This document shows positions 10,570 to 59,956 of a DNA stretch of 64,000 nucleotides, one piece after another; position 1 is the first letter of the stretch, and each line of letters opens with the position of its first letter. The DNA is from Octopus sinensis (Eukaryota). The position numbers and the translations under genes are program-made. The stretch spans positions 5,394,001-5,458,000 of the forward strand of contig NC_043023.1 of NCBI RefSeq assembly GCF_006345805.1, in the 5' to 3' direction. Below the pieces are notes generated by a model. It was not told where the DNA came from and did no database searches. It worked only from the letters and a program-made list of their open reading frames with translations.

Positions 10570-11290
10570 TCTTTTATTCTTTTACTTGCTCCAGTTGCTT
10601 GACAGCGGCCATGCTGCAGCACTGCATTCAAATCAACCTCAGGAATTATTTCTTAAGCCTAGTACTTATTCTACAGGTCTCTTTTGCCAAACCACAAAGT
10701 TACAGGGATGTAAATACACCAACATCAATTGTCAAATGGTAGTGGAGGGAACAAACACACACACACACATATACGACAGGTTTCTTTCGGTTTCCATCTA
10801 CCAAATCCACTCACAAAGCTTTGGTTGGCACGAGGCTATAGTAGAAGACACTTGCCCAAGGCGCATTGCATTGGGAATGAACTCAGGACCATGTGGTTGG
10901 GAAGTAAACCTCTTATGACACAACCACGCCTGTACCTATCGTTCTGAGTTCTTAAGATATCAGCACTGCTCAGTTTTCTTTGTATACATAGTTGAGCATT
11001 CTGGGAAAACAAAGAACTCAAGCATTCTAGGAGAACATAGAACACACATATTTCAGGCACACAGAAAATGATAAATTTACTGTAAACACAAGCACACATG
11101 GGTCTTCTGTTGCTAAATTGAACATATGGGCACAGGTGTGGCTGTGTGGTAAGAAATTTGCTTCCAAACCACGTGGTTCTGGGTTCAGTCCTACTGTGTG
11201 GCACCTTGGGCAAGTGTCTTCTACTATACCCTGGGTTGACCAAAGTCTTGTAAATGGATTTGGTGGACAGAAACAAAAAGAAGCCCGTCG

Positions 11291-11971: not shown

Positions 11972-12012
<41 letters not shown>

Positions 12013-12013
<1 letters not shown>

Positions 12014-12462
12014 GAGTGGCTGTGTGGTAAGTAGCTTGTTTACCAACCACATGGTTCCAGGTTCAGCCCCACTATGTGGCACCTTGGGCAAGTGTCTTCT
12101 ACTATAGCCTTGGGCCGACCAAAGCCTTGTGAGTGGATTTGGTAGACGGAAACTGAAAGAAGCCCGTCATATATATGTGTATATATATATAATATATATA
12201 TATATATTATATAATATATATATATTTATATTATATATATGTGTGTGTTGTGTGTGTGTGTGTGTTTTTGTCCCTCCAACATGCTTGACAACTGATGTTG
12301 GTGTGTTTACGTCCCTGTAACTTAGCGGTTTGGCAAAAAGAACTGATAGAATAAGTACTCGGCTTACAAAGAATAAGTCCTGGGGTCGATTTGCTTGACT
12401 AAAAAGGTGGTGCTCCAGCATGGTCGCAGTCAAATGACTGAAACAAGTAAAAGAATAAAAGA
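12013..12462 (+). mobile_element. Family A SINE (tRNA-like head, internal (TA)n/(TG)n, body, gagtaaaa-type tail), full length
   Basis: ggagtggctgtgtggtaagtagc...ggttcagcccc (A/B-box-like)...gaaagaagcccgtc-(TA)n-...gcagtcaaatgactgaaacaagtaaaag. Confidence 0.88.
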
Positions 12463-15851: not shown

Positions 15852-17212
15852 ACTCTTTACTCTCTTTTTTACTCTTTTACTTGTTTCAGTCATTTGACTG
15901 CGGCCATGCTGGAGCACCACCTTTTAGTACTTATTTTATCGGTCTCTTTTTGCCGAACCGCTAAGTGACGGGGACCTAAACACACCAGCATCGGTTGTCA
16001 AGCAATGCTAGGGGGACAAACACAGACACACAAACACACACACATATACATATATATACATATATACGACAGGCTTCTTTCAGTTTCCGTCTACCAAATC
16101 CACTCACAAGGCATGGTCGGCCCGGGGCTATAGCAGAAGACACTTGCCCAAGATGCCACGCAGTGGACTGAACCCGCAACCGTGTGGTTGGTTAGCAAGC
16201 TACTTACCACACAGCCACTCCTGCGCCTACATGTATATATATATATACATATACATATATATGACGGGCTTCTTTCAGTTTCCGTTTACCAAATCCACTC
16301 ACAAGGCTTTGGTCGGCCTGAGGCTATAGTAGAAGACATTTGCCCAAGGTGCCACGCAGTGGGACTGAACCCGGAACCATGTGGTTGGTAAGCATTCTAC
16401 TTACCACACAGCCACTCCTACGAATTAAAAATGAAACTTTTTTATTTTCCATTTCAAGGAAAATCTATGAGGAGCGGCTGGAGGACTTGAAATTCACACA
16501 CACACATAGATATGCGACTTCACCCTCCATTCCATAAAATCTCCCCTCACCCTACATACATGCGCCCATCCATCCGCCGCAACATTACCACTATCACTAT
16601 TGCTATCGCCTATCCTGGTGTCAAAGTTAACTGCCCTTTGTTTTTGTGTATCTATACAATCCTCTGTGTGTATGTGTGTGTGTGTGTGTGTACGTGATTG
16701 TATTGTGTGTTGGTTTTCAAAAGTGTGACAGATCATGTCACGAAGTGCGTCATGAAATCACAATTAGTGATACCATCTAAACCATCTTACTCACTAGGAA
16801 TGCCTATGTATGTTCGTGTGTGTGTGTATGTATGTATATGTGGCTGTGTGGTAAGTAGCTTGCTTACGAACCACATGGTTCCGGGTTCAGTCCCACTGCA
16901 TGGCACCTTGGGCAAGTGTCTTCTACTATAGCCTCAGGCCGACCAAAACCTTGTCAGTGGATTTGGTAGACAGAAACTGAAAGAAGCCCGTCGTATATAT
17001 ATATTATATATAAAAACATATGTGTGTGTGTGTGTGTGTGTTTGTTTGTTCCCCAACATCGCTTGACAACCGATGCTGGTGTGTTTACGTCCCCATAACT
17101 TAGCGATTCGGCAAAATACACCGATAGAATAAGTACTAGGGTCGATTTGTTCGACTAAAGGCGGTGCTCCAGCATGGCCACAGTCAAATGACAGAAACAA
17201 GTAAAAAAAAGA

Positions 17213-29316: not shown

Positions 29317-31948
29317 TATGCACTGATATATAGATACACATCAGAATACTTTTTCCAAATTTCAAGTTTCATTCTGTAGATATAAATGTGCGATCTTTAA
29401 CAAGTATGCGTGATTGTGCCCCCATCAGTTAAAAAAAAAATTTTTTTATCATATTAAATTCTGACTCAGTAATAATTTATGCCATCTGAAAGGTATTTGT
29501 AGAAAATTTCATTCAAAAAGGGCAGTTCTTTTCTGTAAGTGACGAGGAAATAAGGCTGGCATGAGTGAATTTTCTGAAACTACCCTTCCCATCCTTGGAA
29601 AATAATTTTCACAACAAATATCCATGTTAGCTGAATCTACACCATCTGAAGTGGGTTTGTAGAAAATTTAATTGAAAAATATTAATTTTTCTGAAGGTTG
29701 CAAAAAAACAAAGTTGTGATTGGGGCACGTTTGTGTAGTTATACTTTATTCTTTACAAGGACTTCGTATATGTTTTTACCTACAAAAGCGTGCCCAGACT
29801 TCAAGCTAGGCATACCTACATAACTGTGCCTCATCACTGAATTTGTCTCCTCATAACTTTCATAATTATGAATGAATTTTTAAAAAAATAAAACTTTGTA
29901 CAAATACACTTCAGATGTAGATTACGATTATACCGGGATTTAGTATGATAAAATAAAATTGGTGAGCTCGTACACATTCAGCTACAAATTAAAACTTGAA
30001 ATTTCGAAAAAAAGTTATGATGTCTGTCAGTATGTATAAGTGCGAGTCCATTAATTTATTACATTTTTTCAATATTTAATTCCAGTATAATCGTAATCTA
30101 TATCATATGAAGCGAACTTGTACAAATCTTCAATAAAAAATACCAAAGCCTTGTGAGTGGATTTGGTGGACGGAAACTGAAGGAAGCCCGTCGTGTCTGT
30201 GCGTGTGTGTATGTATGTGTGTGCGTGCGTGTGTGTGTGTGATTGTAGGTCAGTGTTTGACCCCACCAACATCGTTTGACAACCGATGCTGGTGCGTTTA
30301 CGTCACCGTAACTTAGCGGTTCGGCTAGGAACCGATAGAATAAGTACAAGGCTTACAAAGAGTAAGCCCTGGGGTTGATTTGCTCGACTAAAAGGCGACG
30401 CTCCAGCATGGCCGCAGTCAAATGACCGAAAAAAAGTAAAAGAATAATTACGAAAGTTGTAAAAATACAAATTCAAGGTGGGCGGGCACATTTGTGTAGG
30501 TATGCCTTGTTCGGGGTTGGGGTACGTTTCTGTAGGTTTGCTCAGTAAAACATTACCAAGTACTGCGTAAATACGAAATAAACTTTTACGTCATAAGGCA
30601 TAACTACAGAAGTTGGGTGGGGCACGGTTGTGTAGGTTTGCTTGTTATTGTTGCATTTAGACGGGGATTATTTCTCGAACAGTGACAGTTTGTTTGTTTG
30701 TTTTTCTTTTTCAATGAATCGACTTTATCTGAAGTGAATCTAAACCATTACAACCACTTCTGAAGTTTTAAAGGTCATTTCTTGCATTTTATCCCCAAAT
30801 AGGTCGTCATATGGTACTCGGGGTTGGCGGGGAGGATACAAGACCCGAACCAATATATGACTCACACACAAATATCTACATACATGCATTTAGACACTAA
30901 ACGTAGTATTTCGATATACACACACACGCTGACAGACACATAAACACGTATTTGAAAACATACATACACACACGGCTCTGTGGTAAGTAGCTTGCTAACC
31001 AACCACATGGTTCCGGGTTCAGTCCCACTGCGTGGCATCTTGGGCAAGTGTCTTCTGCTATAGCCCCGGGCCGACCAATGCCTTGTGAGTGGATTTGGTA
31101 GACGGAAACTGAAAGAAGCCTGTCGTATATATGTATATGTATGTGTGTGTGTGTATATGTTTGTGTGTCTGTGTTTGTACACCCTAGCATTGTTTGACAA
31201 CCGATGCTGGTGTGTTTACGTCCCCGTAACTTAGCGATTCGGCAAAAAGAGACCGATAGAATAAGTACTGGGCTTACAAAAGAATAAGTCCCGGGGTCGA
31301 TTTGCTCGACTAAAGGCGGTGCTCCAGCATGGCCGCAGTCAAATGACTGAAACAAGTAAAAGAGTAAAGAGTATACGTAATATCACACGCTGTACAGTAC
31401 ACCCTTTCACATATTCACGCCCACACACGCAACATTCACACACTGACACATTCACACAATCACACACAGTAAATGATTCATACAGTACACCCATTCACAC
31501 ACACACTCCCTCTCTTTCTCTCACCCTCTCTCTCTTTCCCCTCTCTTTCTCTCTCTCTCTCTTACATAAAAATCCCGCCTCTCTTTCAGACTTTAGTTCA
31601 GAGTAATAAACAACTTCGAGACAGCACAGACTTGAAACCTGAATCGCTCCCCAGCCGTTTGTGCTTCGCGAATTGCTTCTGCCACAACTGGTCGTAACAA
31701 ATAAGGGATTAATTACAAACCAGAACACTGATTAATTGTTTTAATTAATCAAGGATTTGAAAAATAACAGACGATTAATAAGCAGAAGTAAGTTATAGCT
31801 TCCGTCTATTTTAATTTGTTGTAATTATATAAATGTTTTTGCTGTTGTGGTTACTGTCGTTCATTAGCCCCGGGTCAGTCCTGATCCAACAGATCTAGGA
31901 TGTGAGATATTCCGAACGTGACCATCCCGTCTTTTATTCAGACATACC

Positions 31949-35777: not shown

Positions 35778-36333
35778 TACGACAGGCTTCTTTCAGTTTC
35801 CGTCTACCAAATCCACTCATAAGGCATTGGTCGGCCCAGGGCTATAGCAGAAGACACTTGCCCAAGATGCACGCAGTGGGACTGAACCCGGAACCATGTG
35901 GTTGTTTAGCAAGCTACTTACCACACAGCCACTCCTGCGCCTATATATATATAATATATATGTGTGTGTGTGTGTCCAAGCAATACATGTCTCAGGGCCT
36001 CAAGATTGCTTGGAGACACAAAGCATACTATACAAATTTGCCTAATCTCAGTAGATATATAAAATTTAACAGACAAATTATTTAAAATAAGAGCTATTAA
36101 TAGATTTTTTTATTGGCATATATATGTGTGGCAATACATATACATAATACATACACACACACATACTCTCTCTTTTACTCTTTTACTTGTTTCAGTCATT
36201 TGACTGTAGCCATGCTGGAGCACTGCCTTTAGTCGAGCAAATCGACCCCGGGACTTATTCTTTGTAAGCCCGTACTTATTCTATCAGTTTTTTTGCCGAA
36301 CCGCTAAGTGACGGGGACGTAAACACACCATAC

Positions 36334-36379
<46 letters not shown>

Positions 36380-36572
36380 ATATATATATATATAATATAT
36401 ATATATATATACGACAGGCTTCTTTCAGTTTCCGTCTACCAAATCCACTCATAAGGCATTGGTCGGCCCAGGGCTATAGCAGAAGACACTTGCCCAAGAT
36501 GCCACGCAGTGGGACTGAACCCGGAACCATGTGGTTGTTTAGCAAGCTACTTACCACACAGCCACTCCTGCG
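35335..36572. repeat. Tandem duplication of a ~605-630-bp unit (unique part plus minus-strand family A SINE)
   Basis: 35335-35939 and 35940-36572 are nearly identical, differing mainly in (TA)n length and single-base indels. Confidence 0.93.
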
Positions 36573-37386
36573 CCTATATATATATAATATATATGTGTGT
36601 GTAATAATTTACAGAAAACGAAAAACGAAGTCCTTCTTTTCACTATTTCATCATCATCGTTTTTAGCAATAATTCTGGAAATTCCCCACTGGGGAAATTG
36701 GATCTTAAGGCCGTGAGCTGGCAGAATTACTAACGTGTCGGGCGAAATGCTGAGCGGCAATTTTTTTCTGACTCTTTACATTCTAAGTTCAAATACTGCT
36801 GGGATCAATTTTGCTTTTCAGTTTTTTCGGGGGTCTATAAAACAAGTGCAAAATTACATAAGACCTACATTTAAGAAAAAAAGCAATCAATCGGTTTTTG
36901 TCTCCGTAAACTGAAAACATTTGTTCGGCAAGTTCCGTATAAAATTTTTATTTCTTTAATGTTTATTTTTTTGCAGCTGAACTGTGAAAAACATGACTCC
37001 AACCGTGACACACACGCCAACACACTCGCGCACACATATATAGATACACATACATAGAAATGAAAGACAATTAATGTGTGTGTGAGTGCGACCGTGCTTT
37101 TTACTGTTCGACCACAAACAAACATTAAAGTAATAAAAAATTTATACGGAATTTGCCGAACAAATACTTTCCCTTCTCGGAGACCATGGCAACATAAATA
37201 AATAATAATCTGGTGAAAATCTGAAAAACTTCAAAAATTTTAAATGCCCCCCACCACCACCACACGATGTACCCATCTGTTGAAAGATAAAGATATGGTA
37301 AAATTCACACTTACGTAGATATATATATACACACACGTGGTGGATAGTTTTGCCAAATTGAGTCCTTGAGTCTTAAATTCTAATAA

Positions 37387-44116: not shown

Positions 44117-44947
44117 GATATATTAAGTGCAAATACCAATGGACCAGCACAGGATCGGTTTAGGAAGGACATTATCCAATTGATGAAAACTTTCGGTCTT
44201 AGCATAAGTACAAATACCAACCTAACAGTTGTCAATTTCCTTTAGATCTAAATAAGAATATTTACAAACCTTATAGGAAGCCCAATGATAGACTTAGTTA
44301 TATTAATGTGGGTTCCTGCCATTCCCCCATAGTGTTTAAAAATTTAGTTAAAAACATTAGCAAAAGAATTTCTAGCCTTTCCTCCGATAAAGACATTTTT
44401 TTGTAGTGTTGTCCCAGTATATAATAAGGCTCTAAAAGATAGTGGAATTAGTGAGGAAATAACCTATACACCTGCCACTAATCCAATAATAAAGAAAAGG
44501 AAACACAGGCATAGGAAAACTATCTGTTTCACACACCCCTACTCACCCAAAGTGACCTTTGATATAGGCAAGTATTTCTTAGCACTGATAGACATTTTCC
44601 AGTCAACCACACTTACAGAAAGTAGACGTAACTTAAAAATCAGTTTTAAAAACATAATTGCATACAGCACACCATACAAAACCAGCTGTTCATGCAGGGA
44701 TAAAAATTTATGCCCACCGAATGGAGCTTGCATGTCCGAGACCATAATTTATGAAGCCAGCGTGGACTCTATATCCACTAAGGACACGGTTTCGATGAAG
44801 AAATACATGGGCCTTACAGAAGGTAATTTCAAGGCCAGGTTCAATAATAACACCTTGAGCTTCAGGCACTGGGATAAAAGGAAAACAACCCAATTATCCA
44901 GTCATATATGGTCCTTAAAAGATAAAGGTGTTAGTTACAACATCCAA
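44115..44947 (+). mobile_element. Penelope-like element fragment (RT thumb region plus GIY-YIG endonuclease), degenerate
   Basis: KPYRKPND...YINVGSCHSP...TPPYSPKVTFDIGKYFLALID, then CSCRDKNLCPPNGACMSETIIYEASV...KYMGLTEGNFKARFNNN...SSHIWSLKDKG. Truncated by the RTE insertion at 44950. Confidence 0.85.
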
Positions 44948-44949
44948 CG

Positions 44950-45883
44950 GCATCATCATCATTTAGCATCCGTTTTCCATGCTAGCATGGGTTGGACGGT
45001 TCAACTGGGGTCTGGGAAGCCAGAAGGCTGCACCAGGCTCCAGTCTGATCTGACAGTGTTTCTACAGCTGGATGCCCTTCCTAACACCAACCACTCCATG
45101 AATGTAGTGGGTGCTTTTTATGTGCCACCAGCATAGGTATCACAACTACAATTTCCATTTGATATTTATTTTGATGTTGATGTACTTGACTCAATAGGTC
45201 TACTCAAGCACAGCAGATCACCCTATGATCCAAGGTAAGCACAGCAGGCCATCCTGCGATCCAAGGTACTTTGGATGAACTGGGGCTGCTATGTGAAGCT
45301 GGTGCAGGAAACAGCCATGAACTCACGTTATTTGTCAGGTCTTCGCAGTCACAGCACATTTCCAGAGGTCTCGGTTTTTTGTTATTGCCTCTGTGAGGCC
45401 CAACATATGAAGGTCATGCTTGACCACCTGATCCCGTGTCTTCCTGGGTCTACCTCTACTTCCTTCAACTGTTGGGGGTGGCACTTCTTCACACAGCTAT
45501 CCTCATTCATCCGTTGTACAAACATCTCTCTTGCACGCCACATTTGATGCTTCTTATGTCCAGTATTTCTCTCAGGACACATACACTCTGTTGTGAGTGC
45601 ACACTGACATTACACATCCAGCAGATCATGCTAGCTTCATTTCTTTCAAGCCTACGCATGTCCTCTGCAGTCACAGCTCATATTTCACTGCCGTGAAGCA
45701 TGACAGTTCACACACATGCATCATACAATCTACCTTTCACTCTGAACGAGAGACCCTTTGTCGCCAGTAGGGGAAGAAGCTTCCTAAACTTCACCCAGGC
45801 TATTCTTATTCTAGTGGTGACACTCTCTGAGCATCCACCTCCACTGCTAACTTGGTCACATAGGTAGCAGAAACTATCAACTA

Positions 45884-51159: not shown

Positions 51160-51527
51160 TATATATATATATATATATATATTATACTCTTACTCTTTTA
51201 CTCTTTTACTTGTTTCAGTCATTTGACTGTGGCCATGTTGGAGCACTGCCTTTAGTCGAGCAAATCAACCCCAGGACTCATTCTTTATAAGCCCAGTACT
51301 TATTCTATCGGTCACTTTTGCCGAACCGCTAAGTTACGGCGACGTAAACACACCAGATTCGGTTGTCAAGCGATGTTGGGGGGACTAACACAGACACACA
51401 CACACACATACATACATATACATTTACAGAATAATTTATTATACACTAAAATAAATATATTCATCTCTTACTTGCTCTCTTTCTTTATATCTTATATATA
51501 TCTTCTTTTTTCTTTTTTTTTTTGTAG

Positions 51528-51637
51528 GTTCTCCAGAATTTTGAAGAGGAATCAAATTTGGTAGCAAATCATTTTGTTGGCCATTTGAAGGACCTTCCAG
51601 GTGACAAGTCCACCTCTCAGCACATACCTGTCCCCTG
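51528..51637 (+). other. Strong 3' splice site upstream of the TIFA-like ORF; either 5'UTR part of the large exon or a separate 110-nt exon
   Basis: Long polypyrimidine/T tract plus gtAG at 51501-51527. Internal donor CTG|GTATGT at 51637/51638. Phase-0 frame is open: VLQNFEEESNLVANHFVGHLKDLPGDKSTSQHIPVP. Confidence 0.45.
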
Positions 51638-51710
51638 GTATGTGTGTGTAGTTGTGCCATTTTGGTAGACTCAACAGAGAACAGCCAGGGGTAGGACAGC
51701 TCTCTGAAGG

Positions 51711-53327
51711 ATGGTGAATGTAATACCTTGTGTTGAAGCACATCAAGGAAACGAGAATGAAGTGGTGATTAGTGTTCAGGGTAGAGTGGGTATTAGGCTT
51801 CATGGTACAGTGATCAGCGAGGAGGTAAGCATAGGGGACAGGCAGAGCGTGGACAACAACAATGGAGTCAACTATGCTGGAGGGTCTGATATTTGGAACC
51901 GAGGTGTAATGGACAGCGTAGAGTTAGGTTCCAGGGTGCAAAATGTTGTAAATGATGAAGAGGAAATGATAGAAAGTGTGAGGATGGATGCTGGGGTGGA
52001 AAATCTCACTGAAGAAAGGGGTAACCAGGTAGATACTGAGGGCGTGATGAGGGACAGTGATCGGGTGGATGCTGAGGATGAGACGAAGGAGAGAGATCGG
52101 GTGGATGCTGAGGGTGTGACAAAGGAGAGAGATCAGGTGGATGCTGAGGGTGTGACAAAGGAGAGAGATCGGGTGGATGCTGAGGGTGTGACAAAAGAGA
52201 GAGATCGGGTAAATGCTGAGGGTGTGACAAAGGAGAGAGATCGGGTGGATGCTGAGGGTGTGACAAAGGAGAGAGATCGAGTGGATGCTGAGGGTGTGAC
52301 GAAGGAGAGAGATCGGGTGGATGCTGTGGGTGTGACGAAGGAGAGAGATCGGGTGGATGCTGAGGGTGTGACAAAGGAGAGAGATCGGGTGGATGCTGAG
52401 GGTGTGACGAAGGAGAGAGATCGGGTGGATGCTGTGGGCGTGACGAAGGAGAGAGATCGGGTGGATGCTGAGGGTGTGACAAAGGAGAGAGATCGGGTGG
52501 ATGCTGAGGGTGTGACAAAGGAGAGAGATCGGGTGGATGCTGAGGGTGTGACGAAGGAGAGAGATCGGGTGGATGCTGTGGGTGTGACGAAGGAGAGAGA
52601 TCGGGTGGATGCTGTGGGTGTGACGAAGGAGAGAGATCGGGTGGATGCTGAGGGTGTGACGAAGGAGAGAGATCGGGTGGATAGTGAAGTGGTAAGCAAA
52701 GGGAGAGGCCCTGGGGACACAAATGGTGTGAGTGCCAAAGTATTAGCTGAACAAAACAGCATAATGGAACAAAAAGCCTCAAACTATGGCAACAACAATT
52801 GTGGCAGCCATAATCATCTCCAACACTATCAGAGTATGGATGAGACGGGGTTATCAAACTACAGAAGACATTTATCTAGTGTGACCCCACACACTCCAAC
52901 TCGTCTCACACTCTTCTACAAGCCATCAATGCTTTCAACCTCGGTGATTAAATACTTTCCGAAGGACGTGATAGTCCGTGCGAAAGGCGAACATGTGTCT
53001 TTTGGACGGAGACTCGATTCTGACGTCCAGCTCAATGACGATTGTATGTCGAGGAACTATGCTGTTCTGTGGTTGCCCGTCAACAACTGTGGCACGTTTA
53101 AACTGCGCAATATCAGCTCATCCAAGGAAGTGGTTGTCAATGATGTCATTCTCTACCCTAATTGCAAAAGTGAGATTATCTTCACCAGCGATAGTAAAAT
53201 AATGCTTGATAACATTGAACTAACAGCAATGGTGAGAGAAGGAAGCCCTTCGTCAACACATTATGAAGTGAAGGTTGAACCTAAAATCTCTCGGAGTACT
53301 TCGTTGCAGCAAGAACCAACTTGGTGA
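51711..53327 (+). CDS. TIFA: TIFA/TIFAB-like FHA-domain protein with N-terminal 12-aa tandem repeats (main coding exon; may splice to 59791)
   Basis: 538-aa ORF. The ATG has A at -3 and G at +4, with an in-frame TGA at 51705-51707. The C-terminal ~145 aa contain FHA core motifs F-G432-R433, S447-R448 and R-N467-I-S. Compared by eye with my recollection of human TIFA: VVKFGR/HVSFGR, VSRVQ/MSRNY (no canonical FHA His in either), FEIKNMS/FKLRNIS, VYHP/FYKP, SLLQENNW/SLQQEPTW. Confidence 0.7.
   Translation: MVNVIPCVEAHQGNENEVVISVQGRVGIRLHGTVISEEVSIGDRQSVDNNNGVNYAGGSDIWNRGVMDSVELGSRVQNVVNDEEEMIESVRMDAGVENLTEERGNQVDTEGVMRDSDRVDAEDETKERDRVDAEGVTKERDQVDAEGVTKERDRVDAEGVTKERDRVNAEGVTKERDRVDAEGVTKERDRVDAEGVTKERDRVDAVGVTKERDRVDAEGVTKERDRVDAEGVTKERDRVDAVGVTKERDRVDAEGVTKERDRVDAEGVTKERDRVDAEGVTKERDRVDAVGVTKERDRVDAVGVTKERDRVDAEGVTKERDRVDSEVVSKGRGPGDTNGVSAKVLAEQNSIMEQKASNYGNNNCGSHNHLQHYQSMDETGLSNYRRHLSSVTPHTPTRLTLFYKPSMLSTSVIKYFPKDVIVRAKGEHVSFGRRLDSDVQLNDDCMSRNYAVLWLPVNNCGTFKLRNISSSKEVVVNDVILYPNCKSEIIFTSDSKIMLDNIELTAMVREGSPSSTHYEVKVEPKISRSTSLQQEPTW
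52017..52700 (+). repeat. Coding minisatellite, 36-bp unit (ERDRVDAEGVTK), 16 near-perfect plus ~3 degenerate units
   Basis: Unit gagagagatcgggtggatgctgagggtgtgac(a/g)aag repeated in register from 52089 to 52664. Degenerate units at 52017, 52053 and 52665. Confidence 0.97.
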
Positions 53328-53346
53328 GTTGTTTTAATGGTTTTAA

Positions 53347-53711
53347 CCCTTTCGTGATCAACCCGGCTGAAACCGGTCTGGCTCTGAGTTCAAATGTCTT
53401 GTTTCCATAAGTTTTGATTTAAAACCTTCCACCAAATCTTAGTCACAATTTATGTTCCTAACACTAGATTAATGATAACCAAATTATTTTAGATTCAAAA
53501 TTAATTGAAAGAAACACAGAGCATCTCAAAATAAATACAGTAACGCATAGGCGCAGGAGTGGCTGCGTGGTAAGTAGCTTGCTAACCAACTACATGGTTC
53601 CGGGTTCAGTCCCACTGCGTGACATCTTGGGCAAGTGTCTTCTGCTATAGCCCCGGGCCGACCAATGCCTTGTGAGTGGATTTGGTAGACGGAAACTGAA
53701 AGAAGCCTGTC

Positions 53712-53759
<48 letters not shown>

Positions 53760-53996
53760 GTGTGTTTATGTATGTGTGTCTGTGTTTGTCCCCCTAGCAT
53801 TGCTTGACAGCTGATGCTGGTGTGTTTACATCCCCGTCACTTAGCGGTTCTGCAAAAGAGACCGATAGAATAAGTACTGGGCTTACAAAGAATAAGTCCT
53901 GGGGTCGATTTGCTCGACTAAAGGCGGTGCTCCAGCATGGCCGCAGTCAAATGACTGAAACAAATAAAAGAGTAAAGAGAAAGAGTAACGAAAAGG
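53347..53996. mobile_element. piggyBac-like MITE with a nested family A SINE (53546-53983)
   Basis: TTAA-CCCTTTCG at the left end and CGAAAAGG-TTAG at the right end. The SINE is flanked by a 7-bp TSD agtaacg (53539-53545 / 53984-53990). Confidence 0.6.
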
Positions 53997-54971
53997 TTAG
54001 TGAGTTTTAAATGCTTTGAAAATGAAAAAAAGAATTCAAAACTATTTTTTAAAAAACTGTAAATTGAAAAGAGGAACTGATAGGGTCAGGAGTGGCTGTG
54101 TGGTAAGAAGCTTGCTTCTCAACCACATGGTTCCAGGTTCAGTCCCACTGTGTGGCACCTTGAGCAAGTGTTTTCTGCTATAGCCACAGGCTAGCCAAAG
54201 CCTTGTGAGTGGGTTTGGTTGATGAAAACTGAAAGAAGCCCATATACACACACACACATATACATATGATGGACTCTTCTGTCGTTAGGTAACGTATGAA
54301 GGTTTGACAATTTCTTACCAAACAACCACACAGACGATTTGTTTATAGTGATCAAATGTTTGTGTAGACATAAGCTCCTTCAAACTGACATTACCTGTAC
54401 AGGTGCAACTGGGTGACACATGTCAGATGTCCAAATGATCGCAGAGTAACGTGAAATGAAATGCTTTGTTCAAGAACACAACGCAACGCCCGGTCTGGGT
54501 ATCGAACCCACAATCTCACAATCATGAGTGCAGTGCCCTAACCACTAAGCCATGCACCTTCACAAAATAATTGGCACTCTGTTGCTTACAAAGATTGAGG
54601 GTTTTAGTTGATCTGATCAACAAAACAGCTTGCTCTTAAGGTTAACGTGCAAGTGGCTGAGTACTCCACAGACACACATACCCCTTCACATATTTCTTGG
54701 GGAGAAATACAGGTACTACTCATTTTTGCCAGCTGAGTGGACTGGTGCACTGAGAAATAAAGAGTCTTGTTCAAGGACTCAATGCGCCACTGGTACTTGA
54801 ACCCTAACCACTAAGCCTTCATTATACACATACATACAGTCACGACTATTGAAAAGGTTGGAAGACGCAACAAGAATTTCTTTCCCCAGACACAACCAAA
54901 TATGCTTCAACACATCAACTCACATAAAGAATCTTGCAAACCAAATCCAAAAATGAAATATATATATATAT

Positions 54972-55565
54972 ATCATCATCATCATCGTTTAACGTTCGTT
55001 TTCCATGCGAGCATGGGTTGGACGGTGCAACTGGGATCTGGGAAGCCAGGAGGCTGCACCAGGCTCCAGTCTGATCTGGCAGTGTTTCTACAGCTGGATG
55101 CCCTCCCTAGTGCCAACCACTCCGTGAGTGTAGTGGGTACTTTTTACATGCCACCGGCACAGGGGCCAGAGGAGGCTGGCAAACGGCCACAGTTGGTTGG
55201 TTCTTTTTACATGTCACCGACATGGACTCCAGTCAGGTGGCACTGGCATCAGCCACATTTGGATGGTGTTTTTACGTGCCACCGGCACAGATATCTTAAC
55301 TACAATTTCCATTTGATTATTATTTTGATGTTGGTGTTGATGTACTTGACTGAATAGGTCTCCCCAAGCACAGCAGGTCACCCTACGAACCAAGGTTAGC
55401 ACAGCAGGCCGTCCTGTGAGCCATGAACTCACTTCATTTGTTGGGTCTTCGAAGTCACAGCATATCTCCAGAGGTCTCAGTCTTTTGTCATTGCCTCTGT
55501 GAGACCCAACATATGAAGGTCATGCTTGACCACCTCATCCCATATCTTCCTGGGTCAACCTCTAC
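54972..55565 (-). mobile_element. RTE-clade LINE 3' part
   Basis: Collinear with 44950-45450: catcatcat-cgtttaacg-tttccatg...ggatgccc...gaaggtcatgcttgaccacc. Confidence 0.85.
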
Positions 55566-57631
55566 CCCGGATTCCCATGAAAAATATATATATATACTGC
55601 CTATATGTTGGTTTCCAATTTTAGCACAAGGCCAACAAGTTTGGGGGAGGAGGTAAGTCGATGACATCAACCCCAGTGCGTAACTGGTACTTATTTTATT
55701 GACCCCAATTGGATGAAAGGCAAAGTCAATCTCAGCATAAATTGAACTCAGAACACAAAGACAGATGAAGTACCACTAAGCATTTTGCCCGGTGTGCTAA
55801 CGATTCTGCCCGGTCACCACCTTAATAATATTGATATTCCTTTGTACTAAAGGCATGAGGCCTGAAGTTTGTGAGGAGGGGACTAGGACTAGTCAGCTAC
55901 ATTGACCTCCCCCCAAAAGGATGAAAGGCAAAGTTGACCTCAGCACAACCACATGGTTCCAGGTTCAGTCCCAAAGCGTGGCACCTTGGGCAAGTGTCTT
56001 CTACCATAGCCTCGGGCTGACCAAAGCCTTGTGAGTGAATTTGGTTGATGGAAACTGAAAGAAGCCCATCATATATATGTACATATATATATATGTGTGT
56101 GTGTGTTTGTGTTTGTGTGTCTGTGTTTGTCCCCCTAGCATTGCTTGACAACCGATGCTGGTGTGTTTATATCCCTGTTACTTAGCGGTTTGGCAAAAGA
56201 GACCGATAGAATAAGTGCTGGGCTTACAAAAGAATAAGTCCCGGGGTCGAGTTGCTCGATTAAAGGCGGTGCTCCAGCATGGCCGCAGTCAAATGACTGA
56301 AACAAGTAAAAGAGAGAGAGTATAGAAGAAATGCCACTTGGCATTTCACCCGGCACGCTAACAATTCTGCCAGCTCACCACCTTAATAATAATAATAATA
56401 ATAATAATAAAATAATAATAATAATAATCTTTTGTGCTATAGGCACAAGGCCTGAAATTCGGGGGAGGGGGATAGTCAATTACATTGACCCCCACCCCCT
56501 AATATTCAAATGGTACTTATTTTATCGTGGTGGCACATGGCCTAGTGGTTAGAGCAGTGGACACATGGTCGAGGGATCGTGGGTTCAAATCTCAGAAACA
56601 CCTAAGCTCCATGCGGCTCCGGCAGAAGGTAATGGCAAACTTCTGCTGATTCTTTCGCCACAACTTTCTCTCACTCTTTCCTCCTGCATCTTGCAGCTCA
56701 CCTGTGATGGACCGGTGTCCCGTCCAGGTGGGGAACCTATATGCCAAGGAAACCTGGAAAACTGGCCCTTATGAGCCAGGCATGACTCGAGAAGGAACAA
56801 ACAAACTTATTTTATCGGCCCTGGAAAGATGAAAGGCAAAGTCGACCTCAGCAGAATTTGAACTCAGAACGTAGAGACAGATGAAATACCACTAAGCACT
56901 TTTCCCAGTGTGCTAACGATTCTTATTTCTTTACTACCCACAAGGGGCTAAACATAGAGGGAACAAACAAGGACAGGCAAAGGGATTAAGTCGATTAGAT
57001 CGAACCCAGTGCATAACTGGTACTTAATTTATTGACCCCAAAAGGATGAAAAGCAAAGTCGACCTCGGCGGAATTTGAACTCAGAATGTTAACGGCAGAC
57101 AAAATACCACAAAGCATTTCACCCAGCGTGCTAACGTCTCTGCCAGCTCGCCGCCTTTGCAGTTCATACATATTCCATTGTGCAAAACTACTTTGCAAAC
57201 AAACAACACGGAACTTGTCAAAGCTGGTGAATTTAACCCGGACTTGGATACACATCCAGAAGTATGAGGCCTGTCGTAAATTCTGCAATGCACCAATCAC
57301 CGCCTGAAATTTTGTAAAACAATTTTCTAAAAGTACTTTAGTGATCTATCTCTTACCAATGAATTAAACGTGCTTGATATATACGCTTCCTTCTCAACAG
57401 GAACCGAGATAAGCAGTGATTATGAATATAAAGTGTTTCACTTGGTGGACAATTGGTGTAACACTTGTCGTAGATTAAAGGTTGTTGACATTAAGATAAG
57501 CGGTCCTTGTATTCATTGGCTGGAAATATGCTGGAGTACTACATGACTCGTAACCATCATTATTGGTGCCAGTTGACAGCTTTATCTCATATCCAAGAAT
57601 GTAATTTCTCTGGTTTTTTTTGTTTCAGTCA

Positions 57632-57855
57632 TTTTTTTACTTGTTTCAGTCATTTGATTGCGGCCATGCTGGAGCACCGCCTTTAGTCAAGCAAATCGAC
57701 CCCAGGACTAATTCTTTGTAAGCCTGGTACTTATTCTATCGGTCTCTTTTGCCGAACTGCTAAGTTACGGGGACGTAAACACACCAGCATCGGTTGTCAA
57801 GCGATGCTGGGGGGGACAAACACAGATACACACACACACATACATACATACATAC

Positions 57856-57916
<61 letters not shown>

Positions 57917-58498
57917 TATATTCTGGATCTTCCTTCACCTATGTTTCCGACGAAGAGCTCCGCTCTAAACGTTAAACCCACCTTCTATCCTGAGCATCCA
58001 ATAATACTATATTTGTTCCACGTCATATGTATGTGTATATATATATAATAATAATGAAATAATAATAATGAAATTATTGTATATAGTGCTCAGGTGCACC
58101 ACAACTTGTCAGAAAGTGCGTATAAAGCATATGCAGTAATGTACAAACGTCTGGAAAGCGAACAATGCATGAGTCAGATACATGCTTGCGTCTGTATGGA
58201 GGGGAGAAAATCAGGTGTAGTGTTAGCGAATCTCAGGAAGCATGGAAGTTTTGAAGGATGCAGTGCTCTGACAACTAACAACTGATGTCGGCAGTTTGTT
58301 CCATGCTTCATATATATATATATATACATATACACATATATACGACAGGCTTCTTTCAGTTTCCGTCTGCCAAATCCACTCACAAAGATTTTGTCAGCCC
58401 GAAGCTATAATAGAAGACACTTGCCCAAGTTGACACGCAGTGGGACTGAACCCGGAATCTTGTGGTTCGTAAGCAAGCTACTTACCACACAGCCACTC
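57632..58498 (-). mobile_element. Family A SINE carrying nested F1 repeat and CR1 tail in its microsatellite
   Basis: Body 57632-57830, head 58340-58498. F1 at ~57922-58025 and CR1 tail at ~58045-58310 lie between them. Confidence 0.8.
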
Positions 58499-59790
58499 TG
58501 TTTTTTTTTATGGTTAGGTTCTGACCTGAGTCACAGCAACAAAGTCCGTCTGCCACACCTCTCTCTCCAACACAATTGTTTCGGTGTCCTGGATACATTC
58601 CAGGCCAATGTCTACAATCAAGTTGTCAATGTCTGACAACATTTTCCCCTTCTTACACCACCATGAAGTTGGTTCCATAAAAGTAATTTGGATGCAGGAG
58701 TGGCAGTGTGGTAAGTAGCTTGCTTATGCACCACATGGTTCCGGGTTCAGTCCCACTGTGTGGCATCTTGGGCAAGTGTCTTCTGCTATAGCCTCGGGCC
58801 ACCCAAAGCCTTGTGAATGGATTTGGTAGACGGAAACTGAAAGAAGCCTATCGTATGTATGTATATGTATATATATGTGTGTGTGTCTGTGTTTGACATT
58901 GCTTGACAACCGATGGTCGTGTGTTTACGTCCCCGTAACTTAGCGGTTCGGCAAAAGAGACTGATAGAATAAGTACTAGGCTTACAAATATATATATGTA
59001 TGTATATATATATATATAAAATACAAAATGGGACAAGAACGCAAAACATCCAGATAGATGATACAAAGAAAAAAAGGACGTGTCATTCTCTCCCTGTTTA
59101 TTTCTGTGTTCCTTTCTGTCAAAGAGCACAGGCTCAAAACATAAAAGACTTTCTCACTTCCCAAACGTTAAACTAATACATCTGTTTGTTGTTTACACCA
59201 CCTGTCTTCATCTTTTGTTTTTTTGTAAATTCTCACTATATATATAATGAGAGAGATGAAAGTTGGAATCTATGAGAATAGTTATTGATCACTACAGAAT
59301 CCCACCTGCAAGGGATTGATGCTTGATGGGTTGAAATAATTATTTTAAAAAAATGTTCTTTTTCAAGCCATGCCAGGCTCATAAGGGCCGGTCTCCTGGT
59401 TTCAGTGGCGTAGAAATTCCCCACCTGGACGAAATGCCGGTCCATCGCAGTGTTACTCATTTTTGCCAGCTGAGTGGACTGGAGCAACGTGAAATGAAGT
59501 GTTTTGCTCAAGAACACAACGCGTCGCCCGGTCCAGGAATTGAAACCACAACCTTATGATCATGAGTTCAACACCCTAACCACTAAGCCACGTGCCTCCA
59601 CTGAAACAATTCTAGTGATCAATAAAGATTCTTGTATCTTCCATCTTCTGTCTCTCTCATTAACCAAATATGTATACGTGGCTTTATTTGTGTGTGTGTT
59701 TAGGCAAGAGAGAGAACGTGTGTGTGTGTGTGTGTGTGTGTTTATTTATACATATGTGTATATTTATGTGTATGTATATGCTTCTTGCAG

Positions 59791-59956
59791 GATGGCCAGT
59801 AGTCGGAATGTTGGCGCCACAGCTCACCAGACTGAACACGTTCTCTCCTCACACCGAAGAAACTTGTATGCCCATTCCAGATTTCTCAGTTCCGGACCAG
59901 TCGAACATAGCCTCTCCAATGATGTCTCCAGAAATCTCCTCCCGGAGGAAAACTGA
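59791..59956 (+). CDS. Candidate terminal coding exon of the TIFA-like gene ((W)MASSRNVG...LLPEEN*)
   Basis: Acceptor cttcttgcAG at 59781-59790. Non-repetitive, GC-richer island. The phase-2 junction with donor TG|GTGAGT (53323/53324) restores TGG and reads 54 further codons to TGA at 59954-59956. Confidence 0.4.

Follow-up and report, generated by a model that had tools for sequence, protein, structure and literature searches.

The longest open reading frame (ORF) in a 64-kb stretch of Octopus sinensis DNA (the window, hereafter meaning that whole stretch) lies at 51711..53327 on the forward strand, has an ATG start and reads for 538 aa. Comparison with the congener O. bimaculoides identifies it as the first of the two exons of an Octopus gene that encodes a 592-aa protein, the ortholog of XP_052834000.1. 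The C-terminal module of about 135 residues is, going by alignments and a modelled fold, an FHA domain of the type found in the adaptor TIFA. With rather better than even confidence, we consider this two-exon gene, with its TIFA-type FHA domain and altered motifs, to encode a lineage-specific, fast-evolving, rewired and possibly multivalent TIFA-like scaffold. The observations behind this reading are the gene model itself, purifying selection, the TIFA-type FHA domain with its conserved pocket, the absence of a complete TRAF6-type motif, and a tandem repeat.

The window was searched for ORFs, Rfam families, tRNAs and repeats, and the next-longest ORF in it that does not overlap the 538-aa ORF is only 194 aa long. 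A preliminary description of this DNA had reported a 538-aa ORF ending in an FHA-type domain; such an ORF is found exactly at 51711..53327, with an FHA match that is significant per Pfam, and the continuation of the coding sequence at 59791..59956 was absent from that account. A splice donor at 53324 (TG/GTGAGT, in the context ACT TG/GTGAGT, the slash marking the boundary) overlaps the stop codon of the ORF. Exon 1 of the coding sequence (51711..53323, +) is the ORF minus its read-through stop; it encodes aa 1-537 and ends with two of the three bases of the codon for W538. It is followed by a 6,467-bp intron (53324..59790, +) with GT...AG boundaries, inside which lie copies resembling a short interspersed nuclear element (SINE) as well as microsatellites. 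The coding sequence resumes, after the acceptor cttcttgcag/G, in a 166-nt terminal exon (59791..59956, +), which supplies the third base of W538, aa 539-592 (MASSRNVGATAHQTEHVLSSHRRNLYAHSRFLSSGPVEHSLSNDVSRNLLPEEN) and the stop codon at 59954-59956. Splicing leaves the reading frame undisturbed, and the two exons together encode 592 aa.

An exact-product look-up of the 538-aa ORF gave no match on record. An exhaustive search of representative proteins returned one close relative (P0001, with 83% identity over the C-terminal 176 aa), whose 90% cluster includes the O. bimaculoides RefSeq protein XP_052834000.1 (P0018, 528 aa). This protein runs 55 residues beyond the ...QQEPTW that it shares with the ORF; by tblastn, its aa 1-473 map to window 51711-53324 and its aa 474-528 to window 59792-59953 (76% identity, E 2e-21). 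The O. bimaculoides locus is collinear with the window from about 48 to 64 kb and has the same exon structure, with the start codon, both splice sites and the stop codon retained. That this region is collinear with chromosome CM046629.1 of O. bimaculoides (80-91% nucleotide identity) also bears out the earlier surmise that the DNA was probably from a cephalopod.

Nucleotide identity to O. bimaculoides is about 90-91% in exon 1 and 80-86% in the alignable intron and flank (81-86% in the intron). Ratios of nonsynonymous to synonymous substitution rates (dN/dS) were calculated by the Nei-Gojobori method between the window gene and its O. bimaculoides counterpart, with the repeat array left out. 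They are 0.38 for the N-terminal region (110 codons), 0.41 for the post-repeat part of exon 1 (217 codons), and 0.37 for the TIFA-like module within that part (152 codons). The linker at 52683..52883 gives 0.59, and the terminal exon (54 codons) gives 1.3, from 16 differences only. Synonymous divergence (dS) is about 0.2 in exon 1 and 0.185 across all 381 non-repeat codons, exon 2 included, where 40 of the 113 changes are synonymous as opposed to about 24 expected if neutral. These ratios, together with the synonymous excess, indicate a fast-evolving gene that is maintained by purifying selection, rather than an ORF open by accident or a defunct copy.

One could still propose a decaying or neutral lineage-specific duplicate, the ORF of which was kept open largely by a stop-free minisatellite. 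Such a duplicate would fit the terminal exon's dN/dS of about 1.3, an amino acid identity of just 76-84% between congeners, and the lack of any exact gene product on record for the ORF. Moreover, a 36-bp repeat without stops in several frames of either strand makes up about 40% of the ORF, so that this part of its length is not independent evidence of coding. We regard this explanation as very improbable, in that the 327 non-repeat codons of exon 1 have dN/dS of 0.38-0.41, the synonymous excess over 381 codons is significant, and exon 1 (about 90%) is more conserved than the intron and flank (80-86%). Additionally, there are no stops or frameshifts, the start, splice sites and stop are kept in two species at a dS of about 0.2, and the FHA domain retains its pocket residues.

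A 290-bp stretch just before the start codon (51420-51710) is about 90% identical to O. bimaculoides, equal to exon 1, which suggests a 5' untranslated region or a promoter. Two codons ahead of the ATG there is a TGA in the same frame.

TIFA is an intrinsic homodimer that forms phosphothreonine-dependent oligomers (TIFAsomes); its partner is the alpha-kinase ALPK1, for which the acceptor Thr lies in an acidic context (D-A-D-T-E-E) and which is encoded adjacent to TIFA in the genome, and the system is activated by ADP-heptose. In the octopus protein, Pfam FHA (PF00498, curated cut-off 20.7 bits) matches aa 429-483 (52995-53159, +), with 23.5 bits when the whole ORF is searched and 25.9 bits when the C-terminal part is searched. 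This core sits within a larger TIFA-type module, aa 397-524 (52899..53282, +), predicted to be an 11-strand beta-sandwich with N- and C-terminal strands outside the Pfam core. The TIFA-type features that had been listed for this domain beforehand are all there, namely S447-R-N-Y (with no His), N467-I-S, Y403-K-P and S531-L-Q-Q-E-P-T-W538.

When a 17-sequence family profile of the module was compared to PDB, the top seven matches were TIFA (8WWY_A, 6L9U/V/W, 4ZGI and 4YM4) and TIFAB (8WWY_B), with E values of 9.7e-9 to 1.2e-5. Profile positions 14-150 align with TIFA 6-146, while matches to other FHA families score lower and are limited to the core; the margin over these other solved families is more than 3 orders of magnitude for TIFA and only about 2.5-fold for TIFAB. 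Mouse TIFA was matched by hhalign with 95.5% probability. An AlphaFold2 model built from a 20-sequence alignment has a mean predicted local distance difference test (pLDDT) score of 85.8, exceeding 90 over residues 21-150 of the model, and so throughout aa 397-524 (a single-sequence model, with a pLDDT of 31, was unusable). Foldseek searches of PDB with the former placed TIFA or TIFAB in all of the top eight positions (E 3e-9 to 8e-7, target-normalized template modelling scores of 0.72-0.81, about 138 columns). The next match was the MEK1 FHA domain (3.5e-5 over 103 columns), so TIFA and TIFAB are ahead by 1.5-4 orders of magnitude. TIFA (PDB 4YM4, 4ZGI, 6L9U, 8WWY_A) is thus the best match by both profile and fold over the module of about 135 residues, with the strands beyond the Pfam core included.

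Per hidden Markov model (HMM) alignment, mouse TIFA T9 corresponds to T392 of the window protein, G50-R51 to G432-R433, S66-R67 to S447-R448, and K88-N89 to R466-N467. The residues R433, S447, R466 and N467 form a putative phosphothreonine pocket, the columns of which are invariant or at least 90% conserved in the family. TIFA R51, S66 and N89 are conserved in the octopus protein and K88 is conservatively replaced by Arg, so the predicted pocket is intact; the Thr aligned with Thr9 stands just before strand 1. The proposal that the domain is of TIFA type therefore stands at the level of family profile, hhalign and fold, which all put TIFA or TIFAB first, and fails at the level of single-sequence reciprocity. 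A single-sequence phmmer search of PDB with the C-terminal 177 aa retrieved no TIFA and only a weak bacterial FHA match (E about 0.8), so that it took the family profile to bring out the link.

The module is not confined to octopuses. An exhaustive search retrieved 14 relatives with 30-38% identity over the module (phmmer E 8.8e-16 to 2.9e-5), which have it at the extreme N-terminus and map back to window 52872-53315 by tblastn. Their sources are the molluscs Haliotis rubra (XP_046577357.1), Potamilus streckersoni (KAK3605714.1) and Littorina saxatilis (KAK7115311.1), the annelid Owenia fusiformis (CAH1777724.1), the amphioxus Branchiostoma lanceolatum (XP_066303835.1), and ENA and Logan assemblies. 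Later searches added the short cephalopod paralogs O. sinensis LOC118763929 and Argonauta hians Ahia01_001137700, along with proteins from Sinanodonta, Pomacea and Nucella. A word-indexed protein search gave zero matches with the window sequence and four each with the family alignment and with relative P0003; given the low sensitivity of that search, the taxonomic breadth of the family is under-sampled. The database labels of all members are "uncharacterized", "hypothetical" or "FHA domain-containing", and none says TIFA-like. No account of an invertebrate TIFA turned up in literature searches, and homologs of TIFA and ALPK1 have been stated to be confined to vertebrates (PMC12457700; PMC11573728). 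This family, from gastropods, bivalves, cephalopods, an annelid and amphioxus, is previously unnamed.

A typical member has a disordered N-terminal tail with a Thr motif, the FHA domain, a long disordered region, and a C-terminal PxExx(acidic) peptide such as TIFA also has. The gastropod Thr motif, for example, is C-C-T-V-E-T-P-S-R-L, compared to D-A-D-T9-E-E-T-V-T-C-L in TIFA. The invariant columns of the family alignment (A2) include P417, R433, D438, S447, R448, K472 and G511. The window gene shares with the family the module and the P-V-E core of the C-terminal peptide; in contrast to it, its relatives have an N-terminal module, lack the 12-aa repeat array described below, and nearly all carry a canonical PxExx[D/E/F]. 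In a neighbor-joining tree rooted on mouse TIFA, with no TIFAB sequence included, the window gene groups with the invertebrate family and not with vertebrate TIFA. Together with its O. bimaculoides ortholog it forms its own lineage among the molluscs (100% support), apart from a set of short cephalopod paralogs.

These short paralogs (P0023 and P0024, 313-321 aa) have an N-terminal VDTDLST[TV]E[RK], followed by PEEHSM and PSEGLD. The O. sinensis locus is at 55665652-55712303 of CM016864.1 (GCA_006345805.1), where the gene spans about 26 kb; neither there nor at the O. bimaculoides locus of the long gene is another gene called within 10 kb. Two further architectures were observed within the family. 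The amphioxus protein (XP_066303835.1, or P0015) has two tandem TIFA-like modules, at aa ~50-181 and ~455-569, with T-V-D motifs before each of them, five T-x-[D/E] in the first tail (P = 0.025), and PVEHDD between the modules. In the gastropod proteins P0006, P0008-P0012 and P0014, a near-invariant C-terminal extension, EWDTDDPNINCYM (the last ~15 residues), directly follows PVENxE; neither TIFA nor the octopus gene has anything corresponding to it.

The mechanism of TIFA and the motifs on which it depends are described in PMC12457700 and PMC10945758. With regard to the TRAF6-type motif, a regular expression search for a complete PxExx[DEFWY] finds none in either the unspliced or the 592-aa spliced window protein, just as the preliminary description had it. 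The terminal exon does encode P574-V-E-H-S-L579 (59897..59914, +), a variant TRAF6-type motif with Leu in place of the acidic or aromatic +3 residue. The O. bimaculoides counterpart is PVEHGL, and the matching place in relatives holds PVEN[SA]E, PCENSD or PQEMPD. More generally, the C-terminal peptides of relatives read PVENSD/E, PVENAE, PCENSD, or PQEMPD with PEESDE, and in the short cephalopod paralogs P[EQ]EHSM is followed 8 residues on by a canonical PSEGLD or PCEGVD. With the two long octopus proteins set aside, 12 of 15 relatives have a canonical TRAF6 motif within their last ~30 aa, and a thirteenth, from amphioxus, has one between its two modules. The absence of the motif from the octopus long form is therefore a derived loss. 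The octopus protein ends in P589-E-E-N592 and a stop codon (59942..59953, +), kept in O. bimaculoides. Compared by eye, this ...RNLLPEEN end is possibly a remnant of the second canonical motif of the short paralogs (...RRFPSEGLD or ...KRLPCEGVD), cut after the +1 position.

TRAF2 is bound in TIFA by an LLQE-type (P/S/A/T/L)x(Q/E)E motif after the FHA domain, plus a PxxE (PMC12457700). L532-Q-Q-E535 of the octopus protein (53304..53315, +), within SLQQEPTW, is kept in O. bimaculoides. It lies 8 residues past the last FHA strand, a position that resembles that of TIFA L148-L-Q150-E151, and the motif is too short for significance alone. A matching TRAF2-type PxxE was not seen on reading the C-terminal tail.

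The candidate counterpart of TIFA Thr9 lies just ahead of the module. T392-P-H-T395-P-T-R-L399 (52884..52907, +) is HMM-aligned to TIFA T9-E-E-T12-V-T-C-L16, with Pro after both Thr. It had been suggested before that this segment matches the Thr9 spacing with the acidic context lost; both parts are upheld, as T392 pairs with T9 in the HMM alignment and sits in S-S-V-T-P-H-T-P, with T-P-H where TIFA has T-E-E. A T-x-E context is found instead in 18 repeat units (V-T-K-E-R). The T392 column is Thr in at least 90% of a second alignment (A1) and Pro in the octopod short paralogs. Since these paralogs have Pro at the T392 equivalent and keep an upstream VD...T-x-E, the upstream motif is suggested as a conserved Thr site in cephalopods. 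The ancestral T9 equivalent, T392, would then have drifted into the proline-directed context T-P-H-T-P.

What may be the most distinctive feature of the gene, and one that the preliminary description did not mention, is a tandem repeat at aa ~107-325 (52028..52682, +). The unit is 36 bp or 12 aa (DRVDAEGVTKER), that is, (D-R-V-D-A-E-G-V-T-K-E-R)n with one Thr per unit in a T-K-E context, and there are 18.2 copies (94% matches, score 1121, per TRF). The array is shared by O. bimaculoides, where an N-run lies inside it (10587-10784 of the extracted locus L001, from GCA_001194135.2, CM046629.1); because of this assembly gap, the repeat number in XP_052834000.1 is unreliable. Two minus-strand ORFs, 52006..52857 (283 aa) and 52133..52762 (209 aa), span the array. 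Both are artefacts and no evidence of antisense genes, because the 36-bp unit has no stops in several frames.

On either side of the array are regions of a different character. The N-terminal non-repeat region (aa 1-~106; 51711..52027, +) has no known domain, with Pfam giving only a sub-threshold match to PRKCSH_1, and is 85% identical to O. bimaculoides at the amino acid level, with the dN/dS of 0.38 given above. Its first residues, MVNVIPC, seem by eye to resemble the N-termini of relatives, e.g., MDKPIPC in Potamilus. The linker (aa 325-391; 52683..52883, +) is of low complexity and rich in N, S and Q, with pLDDT below 50 in the modelled part. It would appear that an insertion of about 375 aa, the repeat included, was gained between the original N-terminus and the FHA domain.

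The repeat unit V-D-A-E-G-V-T-K-E-R is similar to the N-terminal tail motif V-D-T-D-L-S-T-V-E-R of the short cephalopod paralogs, and a second group of short relatives has the tail motifs V-D-C-A-A-P-T-V-E-K and V-D-T-Q-A-P-T-V-E-K. All six short relatives have the shared pattern, VDx4TxE[KR], in their N-terminal tails, and the remaining relatives lack it; the shuffle expectation is 0.002. The tail of the window protein contains 16 exact matches to it and 18 T-x-[D/E]. That five fixed positions of ten should recur by chance in a tail ahead of an FHA domain seems unlikely. The octopus long form may thus have amplified a phospho-acceptor motif about 18-fold. Multiple T-x-[D/E] motifs in the tail were also considered as a general trend of the family and were rejected as such, with only amphioxus being marginal (P = 0.025) and the others non-significant.

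The loss of the TRAF6-type motif raises the main rival explanation, namely that the protein is a TIFAB-like regulator which is itself incompetent for signaling, pairs with the product of LOC118763929 through its FHA module, and dampens or buffers signaling. TIFAB, a paralog and negative regulator of TIFA, has neither the phospho-site nor the TRAF6 motif and modulates TIFA by heterodimerizing with it (PMC10945758). Like it, the octopus protein has a TIFA-type FHA domain with no canonical TRAF6 motif, in the long form and in its ortholog, alongside a short paralog with PSEGLD or PCEGVD; T392 has lost its acidic context, and TIFAB (8WWY_B) is among the top matches by profile (E 1.2e-5) and by fold (E 4e-8). 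However, TIFAB is small and without a phospho-acceptor, whereas the octopus protein keeps its predicted phosphothreonine pocket and T392 and has gained about 18 Thr-containing units, not lost phospho-sites. PVEH[SG]L, common to both octopus species and similar to the paralogs' PxEHSM, suggests that some peptide function was retained. The origins of the two would in any case be independent, as the tree, which included no TIFAB, places the octopus gene with the invertebrate family. On balance we find a TIFAB-like role unlikely, albeit the strongest of the alternatives, and favor the rewired TIFA-like scaffold.

We would like to note that a number of points weigh against that scaffold. The resemblance to TIFA is distant, with 23 identities in 130 aligned columns (~18%). 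When mouse TIFA 6-146 is the phmmer query, the window protein receives -0.1 bits, less than an unrelated FHA decoy does (P0017, 6.9 bits), and the best family scores are only 17.8 bits for Potamilus, 15.7 for amphioxus and 13.4 for Haliotis; because this single-sequence search misses the window protein, reciprocity is found only at the profile and fold level. There is accordingly some residual chance of convergence within the FHA superfamily instead of kinship with TIFA. The TIFA-defining TRAF6 motif is missing per regular expression search from both the window protein and its O. bimaculoides ortholog, and the terminal exon has no detectable constraint (dN/dS 1.3 from just 16 differences). The register of T9 to T392 is good to within 2 residues, HMMER and MAFFT disagreeing by 2. 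The VDx4TxE[KR] pattern was chosen post hoc, and the six proteins that have it represent only two independent groups; T-x-[D/E] enrichment of the tail is not clear family-wide. ALPK1 is reported from vertebrates only (PMC12457700; PMC11573728), so the upstream kinase would have to be a different one. Finally, phosphorylation, oligomerization, TRAF coupling and an immune role are steps that we infer.

FHA domains are widespread in nuclear proteins. The gene could accordingly encode a generic FHA protein without TIFA-like signaling, such as a nuclear or RNA-processing phospho-reader, its likeness to TIFA being a matter of FHA ancestry or convergence. The very low identity to TIFA, the failed single-sequence search and the missing TRAF6 motif are all compatible with this, as is the RefSeq name of the O. 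bimaculoides ortholog, "splicing regulatory glutamine/lysine-rich protein 1" (SREK1). Yet Pfam detects an FHA domain and no RRM or other domain in the protein, TIFA and TIFAB lead by profile and by fold with alignments that are full-length and not core-only, and the relatives combine an N-terminal Thr motif, an FHA domain and a C-terminal PxExx(acidic), which is the specific architecture of TIFA. We therefore consider a generic FHA protein quite unlikely, rather more so than a TIFAB-like regulator. As for the SREK1 annotation of XP_052834000.1, we rejected it; the two proteins have only a charged E/K/R-rich low-complexity region in common, with no RRM or RS domain in the octopus protein, and the charged repeat is the most likely source of the name.

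Even so, the octopus gene is not filed here as a TIFA ortholog, on account of the missing TRAF6 motif and acidic context, its size and architecture, and the lack of single-sequence reciprocity. TIFA is 184 aa long with an N-terminal FHA domain, whereas the octopus protein is 592 aa long, its FHA domain (aa 397-524) lying behind an extension of about 375 aa with an 18-fold repeat; it has T-P-H and not T-E-E, PVEHSL and not a complete TRAF6 motif, and no matching PxxE seen in the C-terminal tail. The earlier suggestion of a rewired invertebrate TIFA-type scaffold fits this pattern, as the relatives keep the full logic of TIFA and the octopus gene departs from it.

If the rewired scaffold operates as TIFA does, a Ser/Thr kinase other than ALPK1 would phosphorylate Thr in the tail, at the repeat units and/or T392; ALPK1 is unlikely because it has been reported from vertebrates only. 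The FHA domain of one molecule would then bind the phosphothreonine of another, either of its own kind or of the short canonical paralog LOC118763929. Phosphorylation-dependent oligomers could form, which with about 18 acceptor units might be highly multivalent. The output through TRAF ligases would be altered, being either weak and non-canonical, via PVEHSL or LQQE, or indirect, via the canonical paralog. TRAF6 and TRAF2 transcripts have been reported in hemocytes of O. vulgaris (PMC4199593). Pfam scans of eight ORFs of the window, i.e., six other large ones plus two pieces of this gene (the N-terminal 115 aa of the protein and the ORF holding exon 2), gave no alpha-kinase or other above-threshold domain.

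A broader and more tentative possibility, to which we give clearly less weight than to the scaffold itself, is that TIFA-type adaptors predate ALPK1 and the vertebrates, with Thr motif, FHA domain and TRAF6 peptide brought together in the bilaterian ancestor under a different kinase. The octopus copy might then be a "poly-phosphothreonine" scaffold with about 18 acceptors, serving large FHA-phosphothreonine networks or condensates, like a multivalent TIFAsome, without direct docking of TRAF6.

The remainder of the window is AT-rich (about 25-47% GC) with many microsatellites, and is typical animal, octopus-like intergenic or intronic DNA; Rfam and tRNA scans of it returned nothing. A SINE-like element of ~150-170 bp occurs 26 times, in both orientations and at 76-98% identity, usually with a (TA)n or (TG)n microsatellite after it. 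The reference copy is at 53531-53700, and others are at, e.g., 12012-12157, 16079-16229, 30974-31113, 35792-35944, 36424-36577 and 58694-58841; neither ARAGORN nor Rfam calls the element. ORFs 44552..45136 (+) and 54902..55357 (+) have a near-identical segment in common (…HHHH…FHASMGWTVQLGSGKP.GCTRLQSDL.VFLQLDALP…), which marks it as a dispersed repeat and probably as part of a transposable element. Neither ORF has a Pfam match.

The gene is already represented in RefSeq, for the sister species O. bimaculoides, under a misleading name that should be corrected. If the family is truly related to TIFA, then the adaptor arose before its known sensor-kinase, ALPK1, and one must ask what activated TIFA-like scaffolds before ADP-heptose sensing. 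This question is sharpened by the report of heptose-nucleotide biosynthetic enzymes in protostomes (PMC11573728), given which ADP-heptose would be a poor non-self signal for these animals. In this context the octopus gene would be a natural rewiring experiment, in which the context of the acceptor was changed, a possible acceptor motif was amplified about 18-fold, and the TRAF6 peptide was degraded.

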